A stretch of 64,000 nucleotides of DNA, taken from NCBI GenBank assembly GCA_950097015.1, contig CATNEN010000007.1, forward strand, positions 10,912,001 to 10,976,000. Direction: 5' to 3'. The DNA comes from Macrostomum hystrix. Lineage: Eukaryota; Animalia; Platyhelminthes. The notes beneath the pieces are model-generated. The model had not been told where the DNA came from and did not search any database. It saw nothing but the letters and a program-made list of their open reading frames with translations. The translations under genes and the position numbers were made by a program. Shown here in pieces: positions 832 through 43,708 of the stretch (its first letter is position 1; the number at the start of each line of letters is the position of its first letter).

Positions 832-3800
832 TCAGATGATGCCCGCCTTCCCAAGCAGGGCCAGCACGGAAGCACAGCATTCAAAGACCGCAGCGGGCTC
901 CGGGCAGGGGCCCCAGAGGCGGCAGCGGTGGGCGGTCAGGGCGGGGCAGGCGAGGAGCACGTGGGCCGCCGTCTCGTCGCCCTCGCCACAGAGTCGACAG
1001 GTGGGGGCCACCGGGGCGCCAATCGTGGCCTGGAAGCCCCGGAGGGCATGGCAGCGGTCGGCGCGCAGCTGGCAGATCAGCCGCTCGTGCCGCCGCGAGA
1101 GGTCAGTCGGCGGAGGAGGCGGCAGGTGGCCCGAGGTGCAGGCGGCGTGCCAGGGCAGCGAGCTCGTGCCCGCAGCGTCGGCGGCCGCCGCGCGGTACAG
1201 CTGGTGCCAGCGGGCAAGGCAGTGGCGGCGAATGGCGGCCTGGGCCGCAGCCAGCGGGATGTGGGCCTCAGCCTGCGGCAGCGCGGAGCCGCGCTTGGCA
1301 ATGGCATCGACCGCCTCGTTGCCAGGGATGCCCGCGTGGCCCGGGACCCACTGCAGGTGGACAGCGACGCCTCCGGCTGCGAGGTGGGAGAGGCTGGCCC
1401 AGATGGCATCGGCAGTGGTGACGCCCGTCGAGTCGGGGCCGGACTCGAGCGCAGCCAGCGCACTCAGGGAGTCCGAGCACACGCGGACCGGCGACAGCTC
1501 GGCCGGGTCCGGTGCCGCCAACACCCACTGGAGGGCCTCGGCGATGGCCACCAGCTCAGCGTGGAAGCTGGACGTCACGTGACCGGCTGGGACGCACAGT
1601 GCCGTGTCGGGCTCGACCAGGGCGCCGCTGCCGCCGGCCGAGACGCCATCCTTTGCCGCTCCGTCGGTCCAGATGGCCGTGCGGGCGGGCAGCAGGCCTG
1701 CCAGCGTTAGCTCAGCCGCCGCTCTCCGTGCCTCAGGCGGGTCGCACCGGGAGGAGGGGGCGGACAGCTGCAGACCAAAGGTGACGGTGTCCAGGTTGGC
1801 CCAGGGAGGCGTCGCGGGGACAGCGCAAACGGGCTCGCGCGGGTAGCCGCTCAGGCCCGCGTCGGTGCTGACTCTGGTCGCCGTTTCCCGCCAGCCTCGG
1901 GCGCTCTGGAGGCGGCGGCGTGGGCCCTCGGCGGCCGCGCAGGCGAGCAGCGGGTTGTCGGGCGGGAGCCTGAGGGCGCGCTCGAGGAGAAGGCCGGCGT
2001 GCATCTCGGCGCGGACCGCCATCGGGGGCAGGCCGGCCTCTCGTTCTAGCACCTCCGACCTGGTGTTCCGAGGGCACCCGGTGATGACGCGCGCGCACAG
2101 GCGCTGGGCTCGGTCCAGCTGCTCAATGGCCGTCTTGCAGGCCGACGGCATCCAGGCGCCGGCCGCGTACTCCAGCACCGGCCGCACGTAGGCAGTGTAG
2201 AGCCGGCGCACGTCGGTCTGCTTGGCGCCCCAGCTGCTACCGGAGAGCGCGGCCAGGACGCCGCACCGGGCGCGGGCGCGGCCTGCGACGTTGGCGGCGT
2301 GCGCGGTGAAGCTCAGCAGGCGGTCCAGGATGACGCCGAGAAACCGGGGCTGGCGGTCCGTCGCGAGGGGGGCGTCGTTCAGCTGCAGCCGCAGCTCCCG
2401 GCTGGCCTCACCTGCGGTGGTGGAAAACAGGGATGCGGCGCACTTCTCCGGCGCCAGCTGCAGCCGCCACTTGTTTGCCCACTCGGCCGTCGCATCGATG
2501 GCCCGCTGCGCTTTCGCCTCGGCCTCCTCCACAGTCAGGCCTTGCACTGCAATGGCCAGGTCGTCCGCGTAGAGGAGCGGCGTGCAGTCGGGCGGCAGCT
2601 GGTCCGGCAGGTCGTTAATGAAAAGCGCGAAGAGCAGCGGGGCAAGAACGCTCCCCTGTGGTAAGCCCTCGCGGAAGAGCCGCCAGCTGCTCGTCGCGCC
2701 GTCGACCCTGACGGCGGCCCTTCGGTCGGCCAGGAAGCTGCTGAGCCAGCGGACCCCGGCAGCCGGGATGCCCGCGGCGTGGAGCTTGTGCAGCAGGCCC
2801 TGCTTCCAGACGGTGTCGTACGCCCTGCGGAAGTCGAACAGAACGACGACAGTCCGCCGGGCAGGGCTGGCCTGGTGACCATCACTGATGAGCTGGGTGA
2901 GCCTGGCGATCTGGTCCTCGGTGCAGCGCCGCTTGCGGAAGCCGGCCTGAGCCGGGTGCAGCAGCTGCCGGGACTCGGCCCACCAGTAGAGCCGCGCTTG
3001 GACCAGGCGCTCGGCCAGTTTGGCCATGGCGGAGGTCAGGGCGATCGGCCGGTAGGAGCCAATCACGTCGGCCGGCTTGCCCTTCTTCAGGATCGGCACG
3101 ACGTGGGCGCGTCGCCACGCAGACGGGACCTCCCCCTTTGCCCAGGACTGGTTGATCACGTGCAGAGCCGCCCGGCGACCGGCGGGGCCGAGGTGCTGCA
3201 GGTGCTCGGCACAGATGCCGTCTGGTCCTGGGGCTTTCCTGGCCGGGAGGGAGCGAAGGACTCTGTCCAGCTCGCGAGACGAGAATTGCTTGCTAAAGTC
3301 TCCTGCCTCCGGGCTGTCAGCTTGTGCGGCGGCGCGGCTGCGGTGGTTCTCGCGGCGGAGGATGCGCGTCCTGCGGTCTTGCGGAAGGCGGCTCACGGCG
3401 GCGTACTCCTTGGCGTAAGCCTCGGCGATGTCCTTTGGTCGGACGTAGAGCTTCTGGCCCACACGGAGCGCTGCATCCCGCTGCAGGTTGTTGCTTCTGC
3501 CGTCAAGGGAGCGAACGACTCTCCAGATCTTGGAGTGGTCTGTGTCCGCTGCCACCTCGCCGGCGAAGGCACTCCAGCTGTCGCGCTTGGCGTCGGCGAT
3601 GATCTTCTTGGCGTCTGCGCTGGCCTTGTTCCAGGCCGGCCGCTCGTTCGGATCGGCAGCGGCGGCGGCCCGCGCGGCCCGACGGCTCTTCACGGCGTCC
3701 TCGACCTCCGGGGTCCACCAGGCCTTCGGGGACGGCCGGGCCCCTCGCGGGATGAACGCCTTGTCGGCCGTCATGATGGCCTCGGTCAGCAGCCGGTTGG

Positions 3801-4749
3801 CTTCGGTGGCCGTCGCGGGCGGCAGGGCGTCCCAGCCAGCCAGGGCCTCCTCGGTCTGCGCGCGGAAGCCGGCCCAGTCCGCTTTGGCCCAGGCCCGCCG
3901 GGCGGCGCCCGCTCTCTTGGCTGCGCCTCGGCTGCCATGAATGATGACGCTGATCGGCAGGTGGTCCGATCCGACGTCCCTCCGCACCTGCCACTCAGCC
4001 CGGCTGGCGAGCGACTTGTGGCACAGGCTGACGTCGGGCGCCGTCTGCCGAGCATCGGCGCGGCGCGGCATGTGGGTGTGGCTGCCGTCATTCAGGATGC
4101 GCATGCCGGAAATAACGGACCATTCAAAGGCGGCCGTGCCCAGGTCCGTCTCTTCCGATTCGGGGTCCCAGGCCGGGTGGTGCGCGTTGAGGTCCCCTAG
4201 GATCACCGTGCTGGCACCTGACGGGAGCCACTGGGGGTTGAAACGCTGCACGCGGTCGTCGCCTTCGGCGTTTCTGATGGGCGGCACGTACAGGCAGTGA
4301 ATGTCCAGGCTCTCGACCGTCTTCTCAGATGGGAAAACCCGGATGCCGGCCCACTCGGTGGAGACGTCCTCGGGGGCGCAGGGCCGCTCATGCAGCACCT
4401 CGTAGCGCAGCCCCTCGCGGATAAGGATCGCGACCCCTCCGCCGCGGGTGGGGCCACCTGAGCGCCGGCCGCTCTGTCTGTGGCGCCAGACTGCATTGAA
4501 GCCCGGCAGGCGTGGTTCCCTTCCTTCGGCGGTGTGGGTCTCTTGAAGACAGGCCACGTCAACACGCAGGTCCAGGAGCAGCTTGCACAGTTCGGGCGTC
4601 TTGGCAACGACGCCCTCTGCGTTGAGTTGCAGGAGGTGCAGGCTGCTGGGGGCCTGAGCGCGCGCGGACCGACGGTCGGGCTGGCGCTTTGCACCGCCGG
4701 GGGCCCGCCGTTGAGGCTCGGCAGGCTGCGTCGGCAGTTGGTCAGTCAT
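832..4749 (-). CDS. Retrotransposon polyprotein: APE endonuclease, reverse transcriptase, RNase H, C-terminal zinc finger (1305 aa)
   Basis: APE motifs LQLNAEG, CLQET, GDLNAHH, SDHLPI. RT motifs KAPGPDGI, YRPIAL, QAGFR, GLPQGSVLAP, YADD. RNase H motifs WTDGA, AELVAI, SDSLSAL, WVPGHAGIPGNEAVD. Zinc finger CRLC...HVLLAC. Confidence 0.97.
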   Translation of the reverse strand: MTDQLPTQPAEPQRRAPGGAKRQPDRRSARAQAPSSLHLLQLNAEGVVAKTPELCKLLLDLRVDVACLQETHTAEGREPRLPGFNAVWRHRQSGRRSGGPTRGGGVAILIREGLRYEVLHERPCAPEDVSTEWAGIRVFPSEKTVESLDIHCLYVPPIRNAEGDDRVQRFNPQWLPSGASTVILGDLNAHHPAWDPESEETDLGTAAFEWSVISGMRILNDGSHTHMPRRADARQTAPDVSLCHKSLASRAEWQVRRDVGSDHLPISVIIHGSRGAAKRAGAARRAWAKADWAGFRAQTEEALAGWDALPPATATEANRLLTEAIMTADKAFIPRGARPSPKAWWTPEVEDAVKSRRAARAAAAADPNERPAWNKASADAKKIIADAKRDSWSAFAGEVAADTDHSKIWRVVRSLDGRSNNLQRDAALRVGQKLYVRPKDIAEAYAKEYAAVSRLPQDRRTRILRRENHRSRAAAQADSPEAGDFSKQFSSRELDRVLRSLPARKAPGPDGICAEHLQHLGPAGRRAALHVINQSWAKGEVPSAWRRAHVVPILKKGKPADVIGSYRPIALTSAMAKLAERLVQARLYWWAESRQLLHPAQAGFRKRRCTEDQIARLTQLISDGHQASPARRTVVVLFDFRRAYDTVWKQGLLHKLHAAGIPAAGVRWLSSFLADRRAAVRVDGATSSWRLFREGLPQGSVLAPLLFALFINDLPDQLPPDCTPLLYADDLAIAVQGLTVEEAEAKAQRAIDATAEWANKWRLQLAPEKCAASLFSTTAGEASRELRLQLNDAPLATDRQPRFLGVILDRLLSFTAHAANVAGRARARCGVLAALSGSSWGAKQTDVRRLYTAYVRPVLEYAAGAWMPSACKTAIEQLDRAQRLCARVITGCPRNTRSEVLEREAGLPPMAVRAEMHAGLLLERALRLPPDNPLLACAAAEGPRRRLQSARGWRETATRVSTDAGLSGYPREPVCAVPATPPWANLDTVTFGLQLSAPSSRCDPPEARRAAAELTLAGLLPARTAIWTDGAAKDGVSAGGSGALVEPDTALCVPAGHVTSSFHAELVAIAEALQWVLAAPDPAELSPVRVCSDSLSALAALESGPDSTGVTTADAIWASLSHLAAGGVAVHLQWVPGHAGIPGNEAVDAIAKRGSALPQAEAHIPLAAAQAAIRRHCLARWHQLYRAAAADAAGTSSLPWHAACTSGHLPPPPPTDLSRRHERLICQLRADRCHALRGFQATIGAPVAPTCRLCGEGDETAAHVLLACPALTAHRCRLWGPCPEPAAVFECCASVLALLGKAGII

Positions 4750-7191: not shown

Positions 7192-9036
7192 ATGGCGGGG
7201 CTCTCCTACCCACGCTCTGCGGTGCCGGTCCCTCAGGAGGAGCTGCCAGTGTGGGTCCTGCGTGACGAGGCGGAGGGCTCGACGCGGCCTGCCGCCTCGG
7301 AGGCGCCCATCGGCGGAGGCGGCGGCAGGCAGACTCGCGAGCTGGCGCTGTCCCGGCACCGCAGGCTGACGGTCGCCAGGTTTCTGGACACGGCGGCCAT
7401 TCACGGCCTGTGGCACGTGGGCGCGGCCCCTTGTGGCGCGGCCTGGGCGGTGGTTCTGGCGGGGATGCTGAGCTGCCTGGGCCTGCACGTGTTCCAGCAG
7501 GTGTCGGAGTACTACAAGTTTCCGCTGCAGTCCTCAACGCGGGAGATCCTCAACGACTTCAGGTTCCCCAGCGTGACGGTGTGCGAGGCGTGGCAGATGC
7601 GCTTCTTCAGGGCCGGCTACCCGGCGGCGCTGCGGCGGGTGCCCGACCTCAGCGACTTCCTGCTGCTCTCGCATGGCCTGTTCGGCCTGCCCAAGTCGCT
7701 GCCGGGGCTGCACTTTCTGGGCAATGCCACCGCGCTGGGAGTGTCGGTGCAGGACCTGCTGATCCAGTGCAAGTTCTGCGACTCGCTCTGCCAGCCGTCT
7801 CAGTTCTCCGCCTTCTACCACAGGCAGTACGGCAACTGCTTCACCTTCCGGCCGCAGGGCGTCCAGGAGAGGCCGCACGATGGCCTGAGCCTCATCCTGT
7901 ACTCGCCAGCCTCCGACCCGCACTTCCGCAACTGGAGCGACCCGGCCGTGCTGGACGGCTCCACGGACACGGGCCTGGAAACCAATGGGGTGCTGGTGAC
8001 AGCGCACGAGGCCAACTCGGTGCCCAGGGTCAGCGAGGACTCGATCATGGCAGCGACCAGCCACGAGACCAAGATCGGCCTGAGAGAGGTGCGCACCCAG
8101 CTGCTCAACACGCCCCAGAGACCGTGTGAGGAGGCCTCTGAGTTCTTCGTTCGCGACCCGCTCGTGCCGACGGTCAGAACGTACAAGACCAGCCTGGCGG
8201 ACCGGCTGGAGTGGCAGGAGGCGGAGCAGATCCAGGCCAGGTGTGGCTGCCTTCCCACGGGTCCCGTCGGCCTGCCGACTCACCTGAGGCCCGGCCGCCA
8301 TTGCGACGACCTGTTTGACGCACAGGGCGGCGGCTTCCAGGGATTTCACCGGCGAGTCCGGGCTCTGTGCGGCGACCTGCTTCTTGCTGGCAACTTCTCC
8401 GCCTGCAGGGACCTCGTGCGGGACCACATGCCGGACCTGTGGCGCAACTGGGAGGCGCTGCAGTGTCACCAGCGGCTCACCGAGCAGCTCGTGGAGGAGG
8501 CCGAGCACGCCGAGGACCAGTGCTCCTCGACTGGCTACCAGTTTCAGATCTTCACCTCGGAGCTGCCCGACTCTGCCAGCCACCAGCACGGCCGCTACGA
8601 CGCCAGGCTGATCTTCCAGACCTTCTCCGGCATTTTGGACGCCTACCTGAAGCAGTTCGCCAACTCCAGCCTGCCCGTGGACCGCCTGCCCGCCGTGGTG
8701 AGGGCCGTGCGGGCCCGCCAGCTGCGCCCGGGCGACTGCACCCGCATGGACAGCAACAGAAAGTTCGCCAATGAGAGCCACTGCCTGCAGGTGCAAAAGT
8801 TCATCTCCAGGCACTTCCTCAGGGTGCAGGTGTATCCCTTCAGCCTCAGCGTCGTCTACATCGCCGAGGAGCGCAGCTACTCCACTGTGGACCTGCTGTC
8901 GCATCTTGGCGGCATCCTCGGCCTCTGGATGGGCTCCTCCGTGATCTCGCTGGCCGAGCTGCTGGAGCTGCTGGCCACCCTGTGCGCCTCGCACATTAGC
9001 TTCCGCATCAACTTCCCGCTGCAGCACAGAAAGTAA
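7192..9036 (+). CDS. DEG/ENaC (amiloride-sensitive sodium channel family) subunit, 614 aa, intronless
   Basis: Pre-TM1 HG motif (TAAIHGL), TM1, FPSVTVC, YGNCFTF, GLSLIL, Cys-rich domain (CGC), TM2 LLSHLGGILGLWMGSSVISLAE with a GSS filter. Confidence 0.93.
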   Translation: MAGLSYPRSAVPVPQEELPVWVLRDEAEGSTRPAASEAPIGGGGGRQTRELALSRHRRLTVARFLDTAAIHGLWHVGAAPCGAAWAVVLAGMLSCLGLHVFQQVSEYYKFPLQSSTREILNDFRFPSVTVCEAWQMRFFRAGYPAALRRVPDLSDFLLLSHGLFGLPKSLPGLHFLGNATALGVSVQDLLIQCKFCDSLCQPSQFSAFYHRQYGNCFTFRPQGVQERPHDGLSLILYSPASDPHFRNWSDPAVLDGSTDTGLETNGVLVTAHEANSVPRVSEDSIMAATSHETKIGLREVRTQLLNTPQRPCEEASEFFVRDPLVPTVRTYKTSLADRLEWQEAEQIQARCGCLPTGPVGLPTHLRPGRHCDDLFDAQGGGFQGFHRRVRALCGDLLLAGNFSACRDLVRDHMPDLWRNWEALQCHQRLTEQLVEEAEHAEDQCSSTGYQFQIFTSELPDSASHQHGRYDARLIFQTFSGILDAYLKQFANSSLPVDRLPAVVRAVRARQLRPGDCTRMDSNRKFANESHCLQVQKFISRHFLRVQVYPFSLSVVYIAEERSYSTVDLLSHLGGILGLWMGSSVISLAELLELLATLCASHISFRINFPLQHRK

Positions 9037-26689: not shown

Positions 26690-26812
26690 GAAGAGCCAGT
26701 CAGTCCAGACAGAGCCGGTCAGTCCAGACAGAGCCAGTCAGTCCAGACAGAGCCGGTCAGTCCAGACAGAGCCGGTCAGTCCAGACAGAGCCGGTCAGTC
26801 CAGACAGAGCCG
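26690..26812. repeat. 19-bp tandem repeat (GTCCAGACAGAGCCGGTCA), ~6 copies, overlapping the MPP8-like stop codon
   Basis: Unit equals the last codons plus TGA of the CDS on the minus strand. Confidence 0.9.
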
Positions 26813-29011
26813 GTAGGCCTGCAGCAGCACCCGCAGCTGGCCCATGCCCGAATTCTCCTGCGGCAGCTGCAGCTCCAGCTCGTTAGTCTCGCCGGGAGGT
26901 CGCAGCGGCTGGCAGCCGGTCAGGAAGTGATGAGGTGGCGTGAAGCTGGGTTGGGTGACCCCGTTGAGGCGCACGCCGGACACCATGTCCGGGCCGGACA
27001 GCATGGGGTGGGCGGTGCCGGTGCCTGGGAAGTGGGCCACGGCAATGAACAGGCAGTCCAGCGAGCGGCCAGCCGGGCCCTCTTTCAGATCCTCCGGCGT
27101 AGAGAAGGTCAGGACCCGCTGCGGGCCGGTGCCAGGGCTGACAACGAAGGGCGAGGACACTGAACAGGTGATCTGCGCGCCGGGGAGGCAGCTGCCAACC
27201 ACCTGTTCGATCTCGGTCAGCAGCAGGGCCTGCAGCTCGATAGACCACAGACGAGAAATTTTCAAGGCTTCTTCGGGGATGCCGGCCGCTCGACCGGGCC
27301 AGAGCGCGTTGAACTCTGCGCCGCGCCAAAGCAAATAGTTCATGGTGTGAAACTGGGACTGGCGGGCCGCGCGCATCAGGGCTGTGTCGCCCCGGTGGTC
27401 CCGCAGCTCCAGGTTGGCTCGCGCCTGCAGCAGGAGGTCGCAGGCTATCTGCAGGCCCAGGCCAGCTGCTGTCATTAGGGCCGTACGGCCGGTCCGGCGC
27501 TCCGGAAGGTCCGGGTCGGCGCCAAACTGTAGCAGCAGTTGAAGGGCTTCCGTCAAGCCGTACTTGGCGGCGGTGTGCAAGAGCCAGCTGGGCCGGGATT
27601 CGGGGATGACGTTCAGACTAGGACAGTCCGGATGCCGAAGCGCCTGGCTCAGCGCCATCAGCGGCCTGTCAGGGTCTCGAACCAGATCCACAAGCTCGCG
27701 CTCTGTCAACAGTCGCGGTGGGAACTCAGCGTCCCGCTCAACCAGAAGGATCCGCATGATGTCCGCTGAGCTGCCGGATACCTGCCTTGCCGGGTTGGCC
27801 AGCTCAGACGACAGTGTGGCCTTCCAGGCGTCGGAATCACCACCAGATCTCACCGACTTACCTGAGTGTGCAGCGTCAGTGCGCGACGATCCTGACGGCC
27901 CGTGACCGGTGGTCTTGTCTTTAACGATCTCGCGGCCAGCTAAACTCAGCAGCTTGATCTGGCGCTTGCGGATCACTGCTCCGGTTGGCAGCATCTGGCG
28001 GCTTTCCGTGGAAGCTGGCGCCGCCGAATTAGACCCGGGCTGCAGCCGGCGAGGGTCGCTTGGGCCTGAAGTGCTCACCGAGCCGTCCTCTTCATCTTCC
28101 TCTTCTCCCTCTTGCACCTCACCTCCAACGTCACCGCTGTCACTGATGTCGTCAGCTTCAGCTGCTCTGACCGTGCGCTCTGCCTGCTGCTCCTCCTTCT
28201 CGTTGTAGACGCCATTGTCATTGCCGTTGTCGTCTCCATCAGCCTCGGCTTCGGATGGTGTGTCGCCAGTTTCGGCAATGCGCAGCCCTGAGAATTGAGC
28301 ATCATCGTCATCGTCATCATCATCCTCATCATTGGTTTGGTCGGCATCATTGAACGGCGCAAAAACGGCGAAGACCTTCGGCTGTGGCTCAGGCTGCTTG
28401 ACTGGTGGCTCAGCGGGTTCAACTGGCGCCGCTGTTTCTGTCACGTGGCCACCGTCATTAACGGCCTTGCCGCGGTGTCGCCGGCGGCGGTGTTCAGCCT
28501 GTTTGCTGGCTTTGCTTCGGCCGCTTCCGTGGCGCCGTCCTGACGACGAGCTGTCAGAAATTTCGCCCTCTTCGACTTCTCCGCCTGTCGACGCAGCCAA
28601 ACGAGCAGAAGCCACCTCAGCACTCTTGCGCTTGTGCTTCTTCTTCTTCGCAGGCTTTTGCTTCTTGTCGTTGCTGTCGCTGCTATCATTGTCTGACACA
28701 ATGAACGCCTGTCGCCGTGCTGCAGTCTTCCCAGCGGACTCCTGGGTGAGTCGTTTGATGGCTTTGCCGGACTTGGTGGCAGCGGCGGTGGCGCCCTGCT
28801 CCATGAAGGTCCGCACGGCCTCCTGAGCGTTTCCCATGTTCCCCTCATCCAACCACTGGTAGCTGTCGCGCCCCCAATCGCCCAGCCATTTCACATAGTA
28901 CTCGACCCTGCCTGTGCGTGGGCTGACGCGCCGGTCGAGAACGCGCTCGATCTCGTACTCCTCGTCGCTGCTGCTTGACAGGGAGCCCTCTTCCTCCTCG
29001 GCTGTGCCAGT
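26795..29011 (-). CDS. MPHOSPH8: MPP8-like protein A: chromodomain, acidic/basic linker, ankyrin repeats, MPP8-type C-terminal domain (5' end uncertain)
   Basis: Chromodomain EYEIERVLDRR...EYYVKWLGDW...QWLDEGNM. Ankyrins LHTAAKYG, GRTALMTAA, GDTALMRAA. C-terminus GP..V..VRLNG..Q..HF...GETNEL...RVLLQAYR resembles the vertebrate MPP8 end as recalled. Acceptor TTCCAG| before 29011; an in-frame ATG at 29128 is an alternative start. Confidence 0.8.
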   Translation of the reverse strand, partial: TGTAEEEEGSLSSSSDEEYEIERVLDRRVSPRTGRVEYYVKWLGDWGRDSYQWLDEGNMGNAQEAVRTFMEQGATAAATKSGKAIKRLTQESAGKTAARRQAFIVSDNDSSDSNDKKQKPAKKKKHKRKSAEVASARLAASTGGEVEEGEISDSSSSGRRHGSGRSKASKQAEHRRRRHRGKAVNDGGHVTETAAPVEPAEPPVKQPEPQPKVFAVFAPFNDADQTNDEDDDDDDDDAQFSGLRIAETGDTPSEAEADGDDNGNDNGVYNEKEEQQAERTVRAAEADDISDSGDVGGEVQEGEEEDEEDGSVSTSGPSDPRRLQPGSNSAAPASTESRQMLPTGAVIRKRQIKLLSLAGREIVKDKTTGHGPSGSSRTDAAHSGKSVRSGGDSDAWKATLSSELANPARQVSGSSADIMRILLVERDAEFPPRLLTERELVDLVRDPDRPLMALSQALRHPDCPSLNVIPESRPSWLLHTAAKYGLTEALQLLLQFGADPDLPERRTGRTALMTAAGLGLQIACDLLLQARANLELRDHRGDTALMRAARQSQFHTMNYLLWRGAEFNALWPGRAAGIPEEALKISRLWSIELQALLLTEIEQVVGSCLPGAQITCSVSSPFVVSPGTGPQRVLTFSTPEDLKEGPAGRSLDCLFIAVAHFPGTGTAHPMLSGPDMVSGVRLNGVTQPSFTPPHHFLTGCQPLRPPGETNELELQLPQENSGMGQLRVLLQAYRLCLD

Positions 29012-30174
29012 CTGGAACGGGGTGGAGCAAGGAAGCAGTAGTGACAGCCGTCCAGATACCAACCCCAATGCAACTGGCTTAAGTAGAAGAAACTGCTGAT
29101 TGATTTGGAACGGCACTGGTGGCTGCATTGGAATGCATTGAGCGCTGTCCACTAACAGAAGATAAAAATAATGCCTAACAAGGTGGGTTGAATTGGAGAG
29201 CCTGGAACTATTCCTTGGGTTCTAAAGCGCTTTGCTTTTTAGAGAGGAAACCAGGGAGAGCACAAATTTAAAACTGAACGGCATCAACTAACTGCTAACT
29301 GCTGGCACAAAGTGAGTAGCTGGACTCAGCGACACTTACTAGGTTGCATCGAATCTAATAGCCGTGACCTAAGCTCCTGACTTAACTACCCCTTACTCAA
29401 TCCAATCTAGCTGCAATAACTCGCTGTTGTGTCGCTTACGGAGGAGCGATAAAAAAAGCAAAATGAAGGCCAAGAGCTGTCACAAACATAATACGCAGGG
29501 GGATGCGTCGGGTCGCGCGGTCTGATTTCAGACGTTCGCACTGCCAAATACGTAGTGTAATAGCACACCAAGAGCCAAGATTAAGCCATGCGAAACAAAC
29601 CTGACAGACTATACAGATTGCTAGAAGTGCACCATCACAGCGAACCGAAACCTGCTGCAGTGGGTGAGTACTGACCGATACACCAAGATTATACAATTAT
29701 TATGAGTAGCTCTGAACAGAGCGCACGCCACTAAACATTAAAAGCGAAGAAAAAGAGTGGCTTATTAGTGCACTAGTAAATCACAAAAATACAAAAACAA
29801 CTGAGCTTAATTGCTGCTTAACTACGAGAATTCGAAGGATAATCGATTAGGTAAAGTATAAAATAACGGACGCATAGGCCTAAGAGAAAATCGGGTTAGC
29901 TGGGCCTCCAACACTCCCAATCTCGACCATCCAAAATCTACTCATTCAGTGGGCTCTGCTCGTCTTTTGCTTCTTAGTCAAGCAGTCAGGGCAGGTGCCG
30001 CTTGTAAAATAAACTGATCCAACAGTAATCATATTTATTCTTTAATCGTAGAATTAGCGCCAAGGAGTTCTGCTGATCTCCAAGGCAGCTATGACTTGAT
30101 GCCAGGTAACAAAGAAAATAAGGGGCGATTTTGGCGCACGCCAGGCCTCCCGAAAGGACCGGACGCAGCGAACT

Positions 30175-31776
30175 TTAGCCGGGACCGGCGCCGGACCGAA
30201 AAGTGTTGCAGCAGACGGGCAGCAACAGCAGCTTGTGGCGACAGCGGGCCGGGCCGTCTGGACTGAAGGCCAGCTGTACATGGTTAGTCTCGCCCGGTGC
30301 GGCAGCGGCCTCATCCGCTGGGTAGACTTCCAGGCAGTCGGCGCTGGCCAGAGGCTTCAGCTCGTGACCGTTCAGCTCGAGGCGGGCGAGCAGTCGCTGA
30401 CCGACTGGTCGCCGGAGCCGGACGCCGCCAAGGCCATCAAGTTCGATGAGGCCAGCAAGTATCAGCTGAGAGTCGGACTCGGCCAGGCCCTCCAAGGTGG
30501 AGTATTTGAATGCGCGGAGGCCGCCAGGCGCCACAGAGAAAAGATGCGGCAACTGGGCAGCCACAATGCTCTGGGCGCGCAGGCGAAATGCGCTGAGCAG
30601 TGGCTTGGTGATGCTGTCTATCCAGTCGCTCAGCTGCTTAGAGTCGAGTAGGGACTGGTGGACCAACTCAAACTCGGCGCCGTGGCGGAGAAGCGCGGCC
30701 GCCGCGTCCCATTGCTGACCGTGGACAGCCAGCATCAGGGCGGACTGATCGGAGCTGTTAAAGTTCTCCGGGATGGCGCCGAACTGCAGAAGGCGGTACG
30801 TGGCGGCGGCGTTGCCAGCTCGGGCAACCAGCATCAGCGGGGTGAAACCGTTCGAATTGGTCACGTTGGGCGAAGCGCCAGCAGCCAGCAGGGACAACAG
30901 AAGCGCCGAGGCGAAAGGGCCAGCATGGGCGGCCGCTGTCACCAGGTGGCTTGTGAGTGCAGCGGGGCCAGCGCGGCTCGCAGCGTTGAACAAGGCGACA
31001 GAGTCGCCGACGGCCACGAGCTGGTGGAGGGCGGCTGTGTCAGGAGGTGGTCCCAGACTGTCGCGGGACGGTTGGGCGAGTTGCAATTCCCGGATAGCCA
31101 CTACCAGAGGCTTCTCGAGCGGCGGTCGCAGGAGCGCCTCGGAAAGGTTGGTCGATTTCTGGAAGGCCGACAGGCTCTGCGGCTTTTGCTGCTCGACTTT
31201 GCGTGTGGAGACCAGGCCGCTTGATGCCGAGGCGCGCTCTCTGGGCTGACCTGACAGCAGGCTGGCCCCGGTGATGTCTTTAGTGCTGCTGTGGATCTTC
31301 TCTTTGAGCTTGCGGGTGGTGCACACCTTCTCGATGCGCTCGCGGGACTTCACACTAGACGGTTGCCGCTGGCGTTTGCGAGGCTGCTCCGGCATCTGCA
31401 GTGGCTGTGAGTCAGGCAACTGTTGGCTGGGCGGCTCGTACTCTGGCGTGTTGTCAACGGAGCTCGCCGATGTGTGGCGACGCTTGCTGGTGCCGGAGGC
31501 GGGCCGCTGCTCGTCAGGCAGCTGGTGTCGGGAGCGCTTGCGAGTGGGCCCAGCCTCAGTAGGATCCAGCACTTGCGTGCGCCGGTGCTGCAGCTTGAAC
31601 TTATCCAGCTTTTGCTTGTTGGACGAGCTGTTGGCAATGAGGTCAGCCTCGGCTGCCCATCTATAGCTGGGGGAGGCTCCAGTGTTTCTAAATCTGACTT
31701 GAAACTCCCAGCCGCGAATGCCGGGCCGGCAGTCAATGACTCGCTCTACGTCTAGTGATGGCGCATTGTGGTGCAT
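30175..31776 (-). CDS. MPP8-like protein B (divergent paralogue, 533 aa): degenerate chromodomain, ankyrins, same C-terminal domain
   Basis: LDVERVIDCR...EFQVRFR...RWAAEADL. Ankyrins GFTPLMLVARAGN, QSALMLAVHG. LELNG...PGETNHVQL matches paralogue A. Minus-strand AATAAA at 30034-30039. Confidence 0.8.
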   Translation of the reverse strand: MHHNAPSLDVERVIDCRPGIRGWEFQVRFRNTGASPSYRWAAEADLIANSSSNKQKLDKFKLQHRRTQVLDPTEAGPTRKRSRHQLPDEQRPASGTSKRRHTSASSVDNTPEYEPPSQQLPDSQPLQMPEQPRKRQRQPSSVKSRERIEKVCTTRKLKEKIHSSTKDITGASLLSGQPRERASASSGLVSTRKVEQQKPQSLSAFQKSTNLSEALLRPPLEKPLVVAIRELQLAQPSRDSLGPPPDTAALHQLVAVGDSVALFNAASRAGPAALTSHLVTAAAHAGPFASALLLSLLAAGASPNVTNSNGFTPLMLVARAGNAAATYRLLQFGAIPENFNSSDQSALMLAVHGQQWDAAAALLRHGAEFELVHQSLLDSKQLSDWIDSITKPLLSAFRLRAQSIVAAQLPHLFSVAPGGLRAFKYSTLEGLAESDSQLILAGLIELDGLGGVRLRRPVGQRLLARLELNGHELKPLASADCLEVYPADEAAAAPGETNHVQLAFSPDGPARCRHKLLLLPVCCNTFRSGAGPG

Positions 31777-33873: not shown

Positions 33874-36800
33874 TCAGTCGCAGGCGGCAGACCTGGGCAT
33901 GGCTGCCAGGCGAGCGGCCAGACAGGCAAAGCTGGGCCGCTGGTCGGGGCAATAGCGCCAGCACCGTAGCATGAGATCGTACACTGGGGCTGGGCAGGCG
34001 GCCGGGCAGGGCAGGCGGTCGCCCCGCTCCAGCATCTGCACAATCTCCGTGCCTTTGAGATCGTGATAGGGCCTGGCGCCGTAGCTGAACAGCTCCCAGC
34101 AGGTGACGCCGAAGCTCCAGACGTCGGACTGGCAGCTGAAGCGGAAGTAGTAGATGCACTCGGGGCTGTACCACTTCAGAGGCCAACGACCCGCGGCGTC
34201 CGCGCGGTAATAGTCGCTGTTGCCGGCCAGGGCCCGGCTGAGGCCGAAGTCCGAGATCTTCGCGCTGCACCGGCCAGCCAGCAGGACGTTGCGCGCGGCC
34301 AGGTCGCGGTGAACGAGCCGGCGGGACTCCAGGTAGCGCATGCCCAGCGACACCTGGTGGGCCAGATCCGTCAACTGCTCCACCGGGCACTCACTGCGGG
34401 ACCGGGAGTTCAGGGTACGGGGGGTTCAGAGTCGGCGTGTAACTGTGCAAACACTCGTTGAGTCAGCAGCTGCTCCTGCCCGCTAAACTCTCAGAACTCA
34501 CTCCAGTTAGCCTAGCTGACGGGCAGAAGCATTCATTGTATTGTATGCACAAGCAAATAGAGATTATTTATCTTATCCATAGGCATTTTACTTCAGAACA
34601 AAACTTACTCGCCTAAGGCCTTAAGGTAAAGCTGGAACTCGCAGATCAGATGCCCCTGAACAAGTAGTCTCCAATGCGGGCATGAACATTACCGGAGATT
34701 GAAATTGTCATCAGACTAGCCAAACTTCAAAATATCTACTGTTAGTAGCCCAGTAGGTAAAGCGACCATTTTATCTCTAGGTAACCTAGTTTTACAAGAG
34801 GAAACCCTTTTTGCTGTAAAAGTGACGCACGGGTGCTTCCTAAGGAACTTGTTGACGGGACCCAGCGGCGCCAGTTCCAGCACCAGCATCAGGCAGCCGC
34901 TGTCCGGCTCCCGGCTTAGCCCCAGCAGGCGCAGCACCCGGGGATGCCGCAGGCCGCACATGGCCCGCGCCTCAGCCAGGACTTCGGCTTCAGCCTCAGC
35001 GCCGGCGCCAGAGCGGAGAGTCTTCACAGCGACGCGGGTCTCCCGGCCCGTCCGCGGATCGCGGTACTGAGCGGCGCGAACTTCGCCAAAGTTGCCACCA
35101 CCAAGGCGCTCCCCAAGCCGTAGCCGATCTGCGGGCAGCTCCGGGGTAGCCCCGCGTGAGTTGTCGAGGGCCTGGTTGTCATAGTCATCGCCGTCGCTGC
35201 TGCCGCTGTACCACCAGTCGGCCATGTCGATGCCGCCGCAGCTGATGGCGCATTTGCCGCTGCCGATGTCAATAGGCTGATCATTCTTTCTGCATTCTCT
35301 TTCCTCTTTACCGCTACCATCTACTTCGCCGTCGTCGTCGATTCGCACCAACACGTCGACTGCGACGGACGTGGGTCGGCCGGGTTTACTGGCTCCCGGC
35401 TGCTCCAGGTCGGAGGCCTGGCGATGGCGACGGCTATGGCAGCAGCGGCAGGTGTCCGAGGCGGCGGAGGAGCAGGACGATGAGGACGGGTCGGTGAGGT
35501 CCGAGTCGGTGGACAGCTGGCGGCTCTGCGAGGATGGGAACGGGCGGGAAAATGCAGAGGCCGGCCGATACAAGCGAGGCAGCTTATCAATCAACAGTGC
35601 ACAGAGTTATAGAGTGCAAGTCCGCAGAGTCAATCCTTGCAGCTTAGGGCCGCCAGCTAGTTTTAGGACAGTTCAGTCCACCAGAACTTGTGTAAGTAAA
35701 AAATCTGGTAGAAAACATGCATTTTCAAACTAAATAACAACACTGCGAACAAAACATTCCCACAGGACAGTGACTGGCTGGGAATGAGATCACAGACAAG
35801 GCAAGGCTGACGAATGCACACTTTAGCTGGATGCCGCGATGGCGCCAGTGAAACAAAATCTGCAACTTGCCCCGGAGCAGTGAGTCAGCACCCAAGGGGC
35901 CAGTTCACTGAGTTCAGCGAAACTAAGCCAATTGCGATTTCTGCAGTTTGACACGCGCCCGCGGTTCCCCTTGAAATCTGCTCCTGTCCATCCGCTGTGA
36001 CTCGCCGAACTGCCAAGACCTCCGCACAGAAGCGGTCACTCGCGTGCTAGTAGGACGGCGGGCAGAGTCTCGGCCGCCTGAATTCAAGCAATCAAGTGGC
36101 CGAGAAGAAAAAAGTCCGAAAAGGCTGCCTGCCACCTTTGACTCAGTCCGTCTAATTAGTAGCCACCAACGCAGAAGTCGCACGCGCTTTTAAGGCCTAA
36201 TTGGTCTACTTCTCTCAGGCTGCGCTGGGCTGGGAGGCTGCAATAAGGCAGCTTTAGACAAAAAAAGAGCTTAAAAGCAACGGCGAATGCGCAAAGAACT
36301 AGCAGAGGCGCCGAGCACGAAGCATCATCAGAAAATGTGTCCCCTCGACTCCCTGACCTCAATTGGAGAGTTGTGATGGGGCACGTGGAATCCAAGGCCC
36401 ATTGATTAACTTTTAATCTCTGGCCCGGCCGTTAGCGCATGGGAGCCGGCAGATCCCCCGGGCCCAATTTGCTGGAATTGACTGGCCGAGAAGTGAATGC
36501 AGACGGCGCTGGAAGGGTCACTCGGGCACCTATCAGATCTACTGACAGGCCGCAGGGTTCTCGGGAACTGCGGATTAGGATCGGACGCGTAATCAAGGCT
36601 AGATTAGACCTGAGACTAAGCCCCCGGATACTAAATTAGACTTGAACGGGTCGCAGCGGCAAGGCAGCAGTGATTGGCTATAAATTTAGCTTCATTCTGA
36701 AGTCACTCCGAGCTGGTCCGGCCTCTCCAAGCCACATTGGCCAGCTGTGCCAGAGAAAGCGTCTGAGCCTGGAAGACTCAACTCAATCAGTGCAACAAAT

Positions 36801-39800
36801 TTTCTGAGCCAATTTTCGACAGAGACCGAGAGACATAATCGCATCTGCAACCGGCAGCGGGCTCCATCAGGTTGCCAGGGGTGGCACGGATGAAGCTGCA
36901 ACTTAGCTGGGCAGAAGAGGCGGTGGGCACTCGGGTACCCCTAGCTCGGCATTGGTAATTGAGAGGCCATCGCCGCCCGCTGACTGTTGTTGCTTTAGTT
37001 GATTAAGCCGACGGCGATTGGGATTTTTAGGGAACACGAGAAATGAAGCATTGTGTGCCAAGGACTTAAAGCAGTTGCGGCTAGGGAGAGCTCCGACATG
37101 CGAGTTTCCGCTGGCTGGGAGCACGAACGGCAGGCATGGGACGCGGATGCCGCCACTGCAGGCTGGGGGGAGCCCCGGTCAGGAAGCGGACTGTTGTGAC
37201 GCTGCCATTAATCAGCCTGCCCAGGTTGCCCCAATAGCAGGCACACGGCTTAGTCAGGTCACCAGTCTGCTGATCCGCTGGCCAGATACGGGCGCTTCAC
37301 TTGCCAATGGGCTAATAGTGCAAACACTGCAGACACCAAGACTTGTGTCTTGGTTCGTAGCTACGCAACAAATAGTAGTATAAAAGGGCCCCTGTGTGTA
37401 GCTTATAGCAATGGGACTCGACTGGGCGCACTCGCACCTTGCAGCTCCAGCTTAATTGGCAAGCAGGATTGGGGCTGGATGGGGAGGGTATAGAAAAAAT
37501 CCCCAGCTTATAGACCGGCATCCGGGAGAGCTGGTTTGTTATTGAGTTGGGTGAGCTGAGGTAGGGGAGGCGGACAGAAGTTTTAAATCCCGGCAGCGGG
37601 CGGAGCGGGCAACTCGGCAACAAGATTTGCGAGCCTCGCCGGACGAGCAGCGGCCATGGGATCCGAGGAGGCGGATTGCGGCTAATGCGACGGGCAGCGG
37701 CTGAGCACAGCTTGCCAGCCAAGACTGGGAGAGTCCATTGCAGAGGCCGCAGAGGCACGGACTGGCTCAGCGAGAAGACGGGTAAATGGAGAAGCCACGC
37801 CCGCCAGAACTCTTAGGATCGGAGACATGCAACTCAGGCGGAGGGACCGGGGTTCGAACTGATGCTGACAAGGGCCGGGCAGCTGGAGTCGGGTTCCTAA
37901 TAGCCGGCATTAACCGGAACCAGGCCTAGAGTAAAGCTTGCAGCACGGGAAAGCAGCAAATGCGCGCCAGATTTAAGGAAAAGTTGACGAGATGCACAGA
38001 TGCACATCGGGAGAATTGCCGGAGCGAAATTTAAGGAAAAAATTAGCAGCCTGAAGCAACTAGCGCACCAGCGGTATTGCCCAAAAAACTGTTTATTTAC
38101 CGGCCTGGTTACGAGCCCGCCAGCAGATGCAGTCAGTAGCGTGGGAAATCCTGCCGCAGAAGACAGGCCTTTTCGATTGCCAGACAGTCAGACACGAGAA
38201 ACAAGAAAATGCGAGGGCGCACTTTGAAGGAAGCAGATTTGGAAATCTGAATCGACAGAGAAGGTTTATAGCAATTTGATCATTCGCCTATTAGCAAAGG
38301 GCGCCAAAGGCCAGAGAGCTGTGACAGACGCTGGAATTAGAGAGGCCCAGGCCTGGCAGCGCAGCCTGCTGTCGCAAAGCATGAATACTATTGAAGCCTG
38401 GAACAAAACAGCCGCCTCTGCTGCGGAATTGGCGTGGCTGCGGCACACAAGAAGCAGAGAAAAGAGAGCATGAAAGCAGCGCCACGGCCAAGGGCACAGC
38501 AGCTGCAACTGCGCAGGACAAAGGCCCATTGTGCTGCGCATGGGAAGGCGATGAGGCAGGGGGGAGTCTGGGGCTGGGTTGCTGAATGGCGGCCTCAGAA
38601 GGCCGGAGCTGTCAGGTCGCTGAGAAATCAATTATCGAAATTCAATGCCACTCTGCCCTGCTTCTCCGCGCTGACTTCTGGGGCCGGGGGCCGACTCGCC
38701 AAGAGCACTTTCTCCTCCCACTGGCTCCATTGTGCCAGAGGGTCAAGCGGCGTGTTGTGGGACCTGTTTGTATTAAGGCCAGCCTTGCAGAAGTAAATGA
38801 ATTGGGGCTTCACCGCTGGAAGCTGCTGAAACCGAAATAGTGCACAGTGGGCAGCAGGCGGCCCGCCCGGTCTGCCAGGAAATCCTCCGTTGCGACAGGC
38901 GTGACCAGTAGGATTTCAGGCAGCGGATGGAGGCACAATTTAAGCGTGAAATGTCTCATTGCGAATAGCCAAGCCGATTGTCGGGCTAATCCGCCCAGCT
39001 TCTTCGTCCCCAGTTCTCAGCTGGCGAGGCGGCTGCGTCACGCACAGGGAGGCCGCGGCGCAGAACGCTGCGTAGCGGAAGGCTCGCTTAGCACACCGGG
39101 ACACCAACAGGAAGTGGCGGCTTGGGGAAGAAAGGAGCCGGAAGTCTCAGGTAGAGACCGGAGAAGCAGCGAAGAGTGCGGGCCACTTCCCACCAGAGAG
39201 ATGCGAATGAGTATCAGCAATGAACTTGGAAGAGCTGGGATTAGTTCTCTAAGGGATCTCCGCCGCACATTTGTTCACACAGTGGATCAACTCCTAACTG
39301 AAGGGATTAAATCCACACAGGAGATCTAGTCCTCACAGGGATCAAATCCTCAAAGGGGATTGAATCCTCAAAGGGGATTGAATCCTCACTGGGTATCAAA
39401 TCCTAACATCGGATCTAATCACAACACAATAGATGCAATCCTCACAGGGAATAACATCCACACAGGTAAACAAATCTAATCTCTGGGATCAAATCAAGCA
39501 CCTCCCTAATCCTAAGGAACAGATCTCAAAGAGGCAACAGAGGATCAAATAATCTCATTTATTTAAGTAAGTTAATTAAAACCCCGTGAAGTTTTATGTT
39601 GGCGATACAAAATCATACAGCTGCTATCCAGTCAAACATTACGGATCTTACTGCGCTCTCTAAGTCGGCCGCCTCTGCCCAGCTGAGCCTTGAGCGTCCC
39701 TGACTGCCGGCCGCTGCGCCGGTAGTGTCGTTCACGGCCGCGGCGCTGGCATCGGGCCTGGCCACTGGGCGGCGAAGGCGGCACAGCAGGCCATCCTGCC

Positions 39801-40614
39801 GCAGGTGGTAGTGATCGACAAGCTGCGCCAGAGAGGCGAACGCCTGGCCGCCTTCGATGCGAAGCCGCCGGCCGTCGGACAGCCGGTCGATCCTGTAGTG
39901 CTTCGGCTCCCGGCGGCAGCTTAGGCTCAGCGCGAAGGCGCCACCGCCGCAAGCGCTGCGCACCAGGAAGGCACCCTCGACGTGACCAGCGGCTGCCAAT
40001 CGACGCTCGGCCTCTTCGCGACAGACGCGGCCGTGGAACCAGGCCTGGCCGAGGTGCAGCTCCGCCAGAGCCAGGCGGCAGGCGATATCTCGCCTGGAGC
40101 CGTTCAAGCTTCGGGCTTCGCAGCCGAGCTGCGTTGCCTTGGCAACCACAGCGGCAGCCAAGTCGTCCAGTGTGACACCCTGCAGTGCTAGTGGGCTGGC
40201 GCCGGCGGGTCGCTCGCAAGGCAGGCTGGCGAGTGTGACGAATCCATCCAAGCGGACCGCATGGTGCTGCAGGAGTTCAACTGGGCCGGGGAAGGCACGG
40301 CCGTGGGCGATGCGGTAGGCTCCATCGGGCTGCCGCTCAACGCTGTAGTGCAGAACACGGCCAGCATGGCAGATGCTGACAGCATAGTTGCCGCCGGGCG
40401 AGGCGCGCAGCAGGAAGAGGCCGTCGGCGGCGCCTCGGGCCAGCAGTTGCTCCTCGGCCTGCTCGCGTGTCAGCCGGCCGTGGAAGTAGGCCTGGCCAGC
40501 CGGGCTGGCCGCAGGACGACGGAGGCTGGCGACCTCCAGGCTGGTGGCAGCGGCTTCACCGCAGCCGCAGCAGCCGGAACAGCAGGGCACGTACGGGTTG
40601 GCTGGGAATTTCAT
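33874..40614 (-). CDS. SYK: Syk/ZAP-70 family tyrosine kinase (tandem SH2 plus kinase), 3 exons
   Basis: Exons 40614-39652 (SH2 YFHGRLTRE..GLFLLR and WFHGRVCRE..GAFLVR), 35582-34831 (GGGNFG, VAVK) and 34393-33874 (HRDLAARN, DFG, DYYRA..GRWPLKWYSPEC). The exon 2 acceptor is the least certain boundary. Confidence 0.9.
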
Positions 40615-41764
40615 TCATTCGCCGACGGTTCAACAGGGATGAGCAGTCGAGTCGCTGCGGCTTTCTGCGCTTTCTCAGACTTCGGTCTCGCCGCGCCATG
40701 AAAGGAGCTGTAGGGGAGGAGGAGGCGGAAGGGGGGTCGTTGGATCGCCCCAATAGCGAGCGGGCAGAGCAGCAACCAACCAGCTGAGCGCAGAGCTGCA
40801 ACGCGCAGCAGGCAGTGGAGGCATGCGTGAGACACGGCAGAGGGGGGATTCTCCAGCAGCCAGTCCGGAACTGTGATTGACACTGCCTCCGCCTAATGGC
40901 AGGGGAGGGGAGTCAGTCTGGTCAGTTCCCAGTTCCTGCTCTCCTCACACGGGGAATAGAGAGCAGAGAAGACAAGCTACCTGTCTATCAAAGCCCGGCA
41001 CGCAGCCTCCAGTTTGTGCGCCGGTTCCGCGTGCAGTTTTTGGTTGCTAAGTGCAGCTCGGAGATCTGACTCAATCAGCTGGCTGGAGGGGCGCCTCGGT
41101 TTGCCGCAAGTGGGTGCCACTAAATCAACCCAGTGAAGAGTGGACTGGCTGAGCTGTTTGCCGGAGTATTCGGGTTACGAAGATTGCAAGTTGCAGCGGG
41201 CAAATCGGATTACAAAACATACAGAGAGGGGGCGGACAGGGCGCGACTGGCGAGCTGTACGCAAAGCTGTGTAATCAACTCGAGCACACTGCGCATCCGG
41301 TGTCACCATTTATTTTGGCTGTCTTTTTACAAACAGCTTGTTATTGTAATCTAATTGCCACAGCCATCTCGGCGAGGATCGAGGGCCTTAATCATTGCTT
41401 CTAAAGTTAGTTAAAAATATTCCAATTTAAGTCTAGCTCAAACTGGCGAGCCATGTTCATGGCATGCTACTAACAACCATTAGCATCTCTATCTTAAAGC
41501 AGCTTAATTTCAGATTGATGCCCAGCTCACCTGAGTGTCCAAGGGCATGCCGCCTGCCCAATGCGCAGCGGGCATTTATGGAGCTCGCACAGTTGCAGCC
41601 GGGCGTGGACAGGCGGGCTGCCAGGCGATAGTCTTGGTCCATTGTGCGCTGAGGAGCAACAGAAGGTCGGCGGTATGCAAAGCATCGAAAGAAAATCAAA
41701 GCAAATAGGCAAACATGACAGCCTTGTTCCATTCGTTAGATACGACTTTTATCATTGGACAACA

Positions 41765-42136
41765 CTGAGTTAGTACCCAGGGTCAAAGCAGGGCACGTAC
41801 TGTCACCACTGAGTACCCAGTGTCAAAGCAGCACCACTGAGTACCCAGTGTCAAAGCAGCACCAATGAGTACCCAGTGTCAAAGCAGCACCAATGAGTAC
41901 CCAGTGTCAAAGCAGCACCAATGAGTACCCAGTGTCAAAGCAGCACCAATGAGTACCCAGGGTCAAAGCAGCACCAATGAGTACCCAGTGTCAAAGCAGC
42001 ACCAATGAGTACCCAGTGTCAAAGCAGCACCAATGAGTACCCAGTGTCAAAGCAGCACCAATGAGTACCCAGTGTCAAAGCAGCACCAATGAGTACCCAG
42101 TGTCAAAGCAGCACCAATGAGTACCCAGGGTCAAAG
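41765..42136. repeat. 28-bp minisatellite (GAGTACCCAGTGTCAAAGCAGCACCAAT), ~12 copies
   Basis: Direct inspection. Confidence 0.95.
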
Positions 42137-42680
42137 GGTAACACTGAGGGGCAAAATTGAAAGGGCTGTGTAAAGGGATCCCCCAAGCAACTATATTATA
42201 TTGTAAAAAGCAAGCAGAGTCCTGAATACAACGTGTAGTTTTGGAGGTTACTCTTAATAAAAGAGACGCATAATGTAGTTTTCAGAATAATTAACGAAAG
42301 TGTTTAACGACGGGAGACAGTTAAATTATTTTGACCGGGAGTGAAGCGGGTATGTTTTAAGAAAAGACTAGCCAATGGGATTTATGCTGCCTGTATTTTC
42401 AGCTGCTCGAGATAAACAGTGGATAAAAATGTGGATAAAAAAGCTGCGAATTCGGGGTCTAAACAAAACAAAGACTTGCATTCCACAGTCAGCAGCTGCA
42501 TTAGACGGTTGATCAGGCTCTGCGTTAAAGAATTTCTCGCTGCAGAGAATTTGATAAGAGCTAGAATACTTAATAAAAAGCGCCCAGTACAGGACGGTAT
42601 GGCTTAGTGCAGTCGGGGACGCAAACACAACAGCGAACAGTCAGCCAGATCGGTCTGAGCGTATCGGTCACACCAATGCG

Positions 42681-42863
42681 TCACTTGCTCTCGGCGGCCT
42701 GGGCTCCGGTGTCAGCAACGGCCTGCTTGGCGGCTCCCTTGGCCTGCTTAGCCGCGGCCTTCGTGGCCTTCGCATTCTTGGCTGGCGAGGCCTTCTTGGT
42801 GGCGCCCTTTTTGCCGCCCTTCTTGGCTTTGCCTTTGCGTGCAGTCTGGCGAGAACGAGCCAT
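42681..42863 (-). CDS. 60-aa Lys/Ala-rich basic microprotein with an H3-tail-like N-terminus and no histone fold
   Basis: MARSRQTARKGKAKKGGKKGATKKASPAKNAKATKAAAKQAKGAAKQAVADTGAQAAESK*. GC3-rich codons (AAG/GCC) within AT-rich flanks. Pyrimidine-rich acceptor TCTCGTCTTGCAG 17 nt before the ATG. Confidence 0.7.
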   Translation of the reverse strand: MARSRQTARKGKAKKGGKKGATKKASPAKNAKATKAAAKQAKGAAKQAVADTGAQAAESK

Positions 42864-43708
42864 TGCTGTCAGGCGATTGACTGCAAGACGAGAATGGCAA
42901 CAGCATGCTTTTGGCATATTTATGGTAGGATTTATGTCAGTGCTATTCTTGTCAGAATATAAATTATTTTGCTACCTTTTTCAAATAAGCACAATTGTGA
43001 AGCCAAAAACATGATATTTTTGCATAATATAGCTACGATACAAAAGAACATTTATATTTTCTTCAACACTCTTTATGATAAGTTTAATAAAATGCAGTAA
43101 ACCTGATAAACTGTTTGAATAATATGGATGTCCATGCAACAACTATACATTACCATAGATAAACCATTAGGAGCACTAACAAAGTAATATACAAGTAGCA
43201 GAATATTTTCAGCAGAAGATAGCAGAACAGCAGAATATTTTTATAGTAAAGTCAGGTCTTGTGTGAACTATATAATTGGTTTTTGAATAATTAAAAGCAT
43301 GTTTTAATGCTTCAATATAATTTTTGTGTCAAGTAGCATCAAGTCTAGTAATCACTACAAAAAGAAACATTTTTTGTCATTCATCTAACAATAGTGAAGG
43401 ACAATTTTATTTAGCAATAGCAAACCATCTATTTCTAGACTCTGATATAATTAATAATTATACAACTCATTGAAAATGATAGACATACCACTGGCTTTGT
43501 CAACCAAAAAGTCATGTCTCAAAAATGTTTTTTACTCACTATATTTATATTAGTAAAAGATCAGTAACAATAATAAAATTTAACGTTGGTTTTGGTTCCA
43601 CCCGAAAAAATTTGCTTGTTATTTTTCTTGAGGATTGAATAGGCTACTGTCAAGTCTAACCTATGATTAAATAACATACATAGCATAGCCAAATAAGTAT
43701 AGAAATAT

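Follow-up and report, generated by a model that had tools for sequence, protein, structure and literature searches.

A trans-spliced gene for a small basic protein with an H3-like start, and its family of orphan paralogues, in the flatworm Macrostomum hystrix

Short K/A-rich H1-like proteins without a winged helix bind linker DNA in kinetoplastids, Tetrahymena and Toxoplasma, and to our knowledge the protists that have such globular-domain-less proteins lack canonical H1. The microprotein described here, encoded in a 64,000-nucleotide stretch of the Macrostomum hystrix genome (the whole stretch of DNA analysed, hereafter the window), is also short, K/A-rich and devoid of a winged helix. Because at least four canonical H1 genes are present elsewhere in this genome, the microprotein family is an addition and not a linker histone. 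Its closest parallels are sperm nuclear basic or protamine-like proteins and the C-terminal tails of H1. With these the family shares small size, 30-38% lysine plus arginine with almost no acidic residues, Ala, Ser and Gly as filler, an S-P-x-K site, disorder combined with a potential for helix formation, several apparently fast-diverging paralogues and confinement to a single lineage. Unlike H1, the microprotein shows no detectable similarity to the genome's own H1 and has an H3-like, not an H1-like, head. No match to the linker histone H1/H5 family (PF00538) was found, and descent from an H1 tail was rejected on the absence of any tblastn match to the four H1 loci. Literature searches returned nothing on flatworm protamine-like or sperm nuclear basic proteins, and nothing on the peptide string itself.

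Two further systems bear on the head of the protein. The first is histone H3/H3.3, to which residues 1-10 are seven-tenths identical from the same Met-Ala and one gene of which lies 0.8 kb from a second copy of the microprotein gene. The microprotein differs from H3 in its total length of 60 aa, in lacking the ~70-residue three-helix fold (PF00125) and in a tail that past residue 10 is not significantly H3-like. The second comprises the known non-histone H3K9 mimics, namely the G9a/GLP automethylation sites, LIG1, and ATF7IP read by MPP8 (reviewed in PMC9768651). These are internal motifs in large proteins, with Ser or Thr after the lysine, for which methylation and reader binding have been demonstrated (PMC9768651). 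The microprotein has the same A-R-K core in a disordered basic stretch. Unlike the known mimics, it is a stand-alone protein that carries the motif at its extreme N-terminus, continues with Gly in place of the Ser or Thr of A-R-K-S/T, and has paralogues that read S-R-K-G and R-R-A-G.

The gene lies on the minus strand of the window and is organized as follows.

42681..42863, minus strand: coding sequence of the 60-aa basic protein (type A, copy A1), with the ATG at 42863 and the TGA stop included
42864..42880, minus strand: 5′ UTR, 17 nt
42881..42893, minus strand: pyrimidine-rich tract and AG trans-splice acceptor (AG at 42882-42881), placed by the leader ends of transcript contigs X1, X3 and X6
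42324..42680, minus strand: 3′ UTR from transcript contigs, at least 280-357 nt

Transcript contigs from four public runs (three studies, four organism labels) span 42364/42401-42881 without a joint. The runs are labelled merely "RNA?" or "?", and we take them as RNA because the contig ends carry the spliced leader; contig depth in these runs gives no ranking of expression. In contigs X1, X3 and X6 the genome match breaks off at 42881, and the following 24-25 letters, when reverse-complemented, equal the 3′ terminus of the M. lignano spliced leader, which is 35 bases long (PMC8629364). The last G of the leader coincides with 42881, and the mRNA body begins at 42880. Since the contigs switch to the spliced leader past 42881, the upstream splice acceptor that the first-pass annotation had taken as a sign of a real exon is a genuine AG, but one that accepts the trans-spliced leader and not a cis-splice. 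The ATG at the end of the leader starts an out-of-frame mini-ORF of 4 codons that stops within the 17-nt 5′ UTR, and the main ATG has G at both −3 and +4.

Every contig reads through the stop codon; there is no intron in the gene and no onward splice into a histone-fold exon. Two of the three outcomes that the first-pass annotation named as fatal to its idea, a missing transcript and such a splice, are therefore not what the contigs show. Two candidate splice sites were rejected. Onward splicing at a GT inside the last codons was ruled out by contigs that all run past the stop. At the 42401 break in X1 and X3 the loose end matches the second gene copy and no GT follows; 42401 is the point where the two copies stop being alike. 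The contigs reach 3′ to 42401 (X1, X3), 42364 (X6) and 42324 (X5). X5 and X6 carry an insertion of 33-35 letters near 42365, and in X5 18 nt are also deleted at 42457. Strains or species differ by indels in this 3′ UTR. The microprotein gene is real, expressed and intronless, with a trans-spliced leader.

The encoded protein agrees with its first description as a stand-alone microprotein that ends at 60 aa and has a K/A-rich body with an SPAK motif. Residues 2-11 read ARSRQTARKG (codons 2-11 at 42831..42860, minus strand). The composition is dominated by 19 Ala and 15 Lys, with 3 Arg and 2 acidic residues, giving a net charge of +16 and a pI of 11.4. Two further features map to the body of the protein.

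42777..42788, minus strand: S-P-A-K (residues 26-29), a motif of the S/T-P-x-K type
42690..42785, minus strand: single long helix predicted for residues 27-58 (AlphaFold2, three-sequence family alignment)

The AlphaFold2 model, built from the three-sequence family alignment, has a mean pLDDT of 67 (64-82 within helix 27-58), leaves residues 1-26 without predicted structure and contains no globular fold. Searches of Pfam returned zero matches for the 60-aa protein at E up to 10. Together with the unspliced transcript and the single predicted helix, this bears out the initial observation that a histone fold is lacking. GC3 of the type A coding sequence is 0.75 (0.71-0.78 across the family) in AT-rich surroundings. 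A 35-codon Arg/Pro-rich ORF overlaps the coding sequence in another frame (42668-42775, minus strand) and is probably a by-product of AAG/GCC-rich coding.

A family profile searched against the genome found exactly four loci; a genome pattern search on the conserved start added none. The additional loci are listed here with the block that the two type A copies share.

42401..42889, minus strand: 489-bp duplicated block, 98.6% identical to copy A2, which lies 206 kb away on the same contig in the opposite orientation
L023 128-298, plus strand: type B ORF, 56 aa, 4.4 kb downstream of copy A2
L003 1495-1671, plus strand: type C ORF, 58 aa, first seen as a weak match 660 kb further on

The shared block begins 9 nt ahead of the acceptor and ends 280 nt beyond the stop. 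Copies A1 and A2 encode an identical protein and differ at one synonymous position in the coding sequence and at six positions in the 3′ UTR. Both type A loci are transcript-supported: past the shared block, X1 and X3 continue in the 3′ flank of A2, X5 and X6 in that of the window copy. Type C aligns with a score of 102, which 0 of 20,000 shuffles reach. As judged by these alignments, the four loci form a new family of three types, encoding proteins of 56-60 aa within 0.66 Mb of one contig.

Pairwise identity among the three types is 48-49%. The family-invariant residues are M1, A2, R5, R9, G11, K12 and K14, and all types also agree at several positions of the body and in a G-A-Q-A motif close to the C-terminus; the conserved core is R-x-G-K-x-K, not A-R-K. 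All members keep CAGCA directly before the ATG, as well as the stop context and stop position. The paralogues can be aligned in the coding part only, at ~66% nucleotide identity, and their flanks are unalignable. Paralogue dN/dS is 0.40-0.63 at dS 0.7-0.9, values that rest on small numbers. The maintenance of the same 56-60 codon frame in three diverged genes is good evidence for a translated, constrained protein. In a close relative (run X5), three codons have changed (G17S, T34S, T52S), all non-synonymous with zero synonymous changes; the H3-like head is unchanged, at a divergence too low for this to mean much.

Across the family, net charge ranges from +16 to +22 and pI from 11.4 to 12.0, Lys plus Arg make up 30-38% of residues with at most two acidic ones, and no signal peptide is predicted. 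Type A is lysine-rich, whereas types B and C are mixed K/R/S, and the types may therefore not share one job. The S-P-A-K site of type A has an S-P-S-K counterpart in type C and none in type B. Type C is rich in Arg and Ser (11 of each; net charge +22), which gives it a more protamine-like look than type A.

Beyond this genome, a profile HMMER search of 1.84 billion protein representatives found 0 relatives at E up to 0.001. A word-indexed homologue search returned nothing, not even the protein itself; short eukaryotic ORFs of such size may be uncalled in the protein collections searched. The ESM Atlas yielded composition look-alikes only, bacterial K/A-rich proteins scoring 0.85 or less. The family appears restricted to the Macrostomum or flatworm lineage.

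The head of type A was compared with H3 using this genome's own H3.3 gene as reference. The in-register match right behind the Met, on which the first-pass annotation was built, was reproduced: ARSRQTARKG and H3 ARTKQTARKS are identical at 7 of 10 positions (A1, R2, Q5, T6, A7, R8, K9), and the differences from H3 are Arg for K4, Gly for S10 and Lys for T11. When ten residues were drawn at random from the protein's own composition, matches of at least 7/10 arose in 88 of 2,000,000 trials. The DNA pattern for A-R-x-x-Q-T-A-R-K occurs at 15 places in the 220-Mb genome (reversed control, 2). These are nine real, complete H3 genes (five of H3.3 type, four of H3.1/2 type), the two copies of the microprotein ORF and four short frames that carry the motif without a Met directly before it. 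Genome-wide, the motif stands directly behind a Met only in H3 genes and the microprotein gene. Other pattern matches (ARSRQTASK, ARQSQTARK and similar) proved to be short chance frames. Past residue 10 the likeness ends: for residues 11-59 against H3 11-40, 68% of shuffles score as well.

The paralogues place this match in context. The type B head, A-S-A-R-K-A-S-R-K-G, has 3/10 identities with H3 1-10, and the type C head, A-S-M-R-K-G-R-R-A-G, has 2/10, with Ala at the "K9" position. Identities A1, R8 and K9 are common to types A and B, and A1 and R8 are also found in type C, so these three look like family background; R2, Q5, T6 and A7 occur in type A alone. The ten H3-like residues are a peculiarity of type A on the family frame M-A-x-x-R-x-x-x-R-x-G-K-x-K, not a conserved core. 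The heads of types B and C exclude K9 mimicry as the common function of the family; it could at most be a type A specialization.

Copy A2 and type B flank a histone gene, and the features of this second region are as follows.

C7:11161554-11161964 (L002 2500-2910), plus strand: H3.3 gene, intact and without introns, flanked upstream by A2 (0.8 kb) and downstream by type B (2.2 kb), all on the same strand
L025 8944-9798, plus strand: repetitive ORF of tandem units of ~20 aa, between the H3.3 gene and type B

The chance of such a pairing is ~1e-3, a rough, post hoc estimate that takes the nine H3 genes of the 220-Mb genome and counts three family locations as independent. No other histone genes lie within 5 kb of the H3.3 locus, and beyond that distance a transposase fragment and a coronin gene are all that can be recognised. 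The gap between A2 and H3.3, ~0.3 kb, is small enough for the operon criterion applied to M. lignano (PMC8629364). Searches for the Rfam histone 3′ element (stem-loop) found none at any family locus and none at the H3.3 gene. A replication-dependent histone-type mRNA was rejected on the missing 3′ stem-loop and on transcripts that extend at least 280 nt past the stop. The pairing of A2 with H3.3 may reflect either descent from the H3.3 tail or co-regulation.

We consider it an even bet that the family consists of lineage-specific polycations binding DNA or chromatin in the manner of an H1 tail or a protamine-like protein. A largely disordered polycation (net +16, pI 11.4) would bind DNA or chromatin by charge, phosphorylation of the S-P-x-K site would probably act as a switch, and binding could turn the C-terminal half helical. 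Its charge makes DNA or chromatin binding the most likely activity, and the H3.3 linkage points toward a chromatin job. A sperm nuclear basic protein, which the first-pass annotation had offered as its alternative, fits the family picture better than mimicry does; the germline or sperm role itself would follow by analogy. The proteins are very basic, small and of low complexity, as sperm nuclear basic proteins are, and their apparently fast-diverging paralogues fit the usual pattern of reproductive chromatin proteins. Possible signs of rapid evolution and turnover, in small numbers, are the 3 non-synonymous and 0 synonymous changes against the close relative and the recent 489-bp duplication. 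A plain polycation leaves two observations unexplained, the 88 in 2,000,000 odds of the head and the H3.3 neighbour.

As to origin, a partial tandem duplication of the neighbouring H3.3 gene could have given rise to the family from the N-terminal H3 tail, with type A keeping the ancestral head and types B and C drifting away. Such an origin is compatible with either a polycation or a mimic function. H3.3 has two family members beside it on its own strand, all within 4.7 kb; the H3-like head begins, as H3 does, with Met-Ala; and an almost gapless alignment to the H3 tail puts lysines at K9, K14, K18 and K23. That alignment is, however, no better than shuffles past residue 10, and the first 33 bases differ from H3.3 at 11 positions, including 5 of 7 synonymous third positions. 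No relic of the histone fold was found in any mRNA frame or near any family locus, and the H3 gene flanks are unrelated to the microprotein gene. The H3 loci of this genome, which has at least five H3.3-type and four H3.1/2-type genes, share coding parts only, at 85-88% identity. On balance we regard birth from the H3.3 tail as unlikely, if well short of negligible.

The window contains a candidate partner for an H3 mimic, and its main neighbouring features are listed below.

33877-41649, minus strand: Syk/ZAP-70-like tyrosine kinase gene, directly downstream of the microprotein gene
30178-31776, minus strand: ankyrin-repeat-only ORF
26798-29152, minus strand: ORF with an HP1/CDYL/MPP8-type chromodomain and ankyrin repeats, of MPP8-like build

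Under mimicry of the H3 N-terminus, the free A-R-S end and Q-T-A-R-K of type A would engage readers or writers of the H3 tail, as a decoy or a DNA-tethered dock anchored by the K/A body. Candidate partners, engaged after removal of the Met, would be K9 methyltransferases, chromodomain readers and A-R-T/S pocket binders. The 7/10 match behind the Met, its rarity among shuffles, its restriction genome-wide to real H3 genes and this gene, and the presence of A-R-K, the core of known K9 mimics (PMC9768651), are all consistent with this idea, as is the chromodomain-plus-ankyrin gene 14 kb off on the same strand. Yet 14 kb in a gene-dense region is weak linkage, and on alignment to CDYL this chromodomain has Asp at the third aromatic-cage position. 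A complex prediction for residues 2-36 with the same chromodomain (score 0.17, mark 0.34) is evidence neither way.

The head itself speaks against mimicry in several respects. Types B and C keep 3 and 2 of the ten positions, with the lysine itself replaced in type C; three of the seven identities look like family background; Gly replaces the Ser/Thr phospho-switch that known mimics use after the lysine; and there is no H3 likeness past residue 10. The proposal of a K9-only decoy or docking site that could not be switched off thus found no support in the paralogues. H3 mimicry by type A is unproven, and we think it improbable.

A combination of descent and mimicry would make the family a tail-only descendant of H3.3, which retained ten residues from the start of the tail, lost the fold, founded a free DNA-binding family with an H3 head, and in type A kept a head still read or modified like H3 (R2, T6, R8 and K9 kept, K4 and S10 removed). 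We judge this distinctly improbable. If it were true, the protein would be a soluble or DNA-tethered competitor for H3-tail readers, or the family would be a protamine-like one derived from H3 and not from H1.

Small size, a Met-Ala-Arg start and a K-rich, part-helical body also recall SERF-type and other small basic proteins. A job outside chromatin, such as RNA or ribosome/nucleolus binding, a SERF-like charge chaperone or a cationic peptide, would suit the one long predicted helix. Against it, the protein has no Pfam match, SERF / 4F5 (PF04419) included, at E up to 10; three canonical SERF loci lie on other contigs, and a SERF identity was rejected on these grounds; a signal peptide is not predicted; and the H3.3 link points to chromatin. 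We hold such a job to be very unlikely.

The downstream neighbourhood of the gene is compact. The kinase gene has a trans-spliced first exon (41649-41531), an 823-nt intron and a second exon from 40707; its product has SH2 domains in tandem (39616-40614), and its kinase domain is split over two ORF pieces (34719-35594 and 33877-34383). Its acceptor lies ~0.7 kb from the microprotein 3′ end, an operon-like spacing. Half of the gap between the two genes is occupied by a 28-bp tandem repeat (41804-42136, 11.9 copies, 98% identity). Elsewhere, the window holds an intact-looking LINE ORF with endonuclease, reverse transcriptase and RNase H (835-4749, minus strand) and an amiloride-sensitive sodium channel (ASC/ENaC) ORF (7192-9033, plus strand). 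That the peptide is functionless, its unit being merely the first cistron or promoter-proximal part of an operon-like unit (with the Syk-like kinase or with H3.3), is hardly credible: at both loci the next same-strand gene does begin <1 kb downstream, and in the window that gene is trans-spliced at 41649, as fits the M. lignano operon criterion (PMC8629364), but the ORF is intact in three diverged paralogues, its start and stop unchanged, conservation is confined to the coding part, and dN/dS is below 1.

Collectively, a DNA- or chromatin-binding polycation of a single flatworm lineage remains our preferred reading of the family. Sperm and chromatin polycations of flatworms are essentially undescribed, and this family provides a concrete, expressed candidate. 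Macrostomum is a model genus in which RNAi and transgenesis work. If the head of type A is neither functional nor inherited, the family would counsel caution, showing that short tail-like motifs arise readily in lysine-rich orphan proteins. Should the H3-like head have a function or stem from H3.3, the microprotein would be the first H3-tail protein to stand on its own and would reveal a second route, besides H1, to protamine-like proteins.
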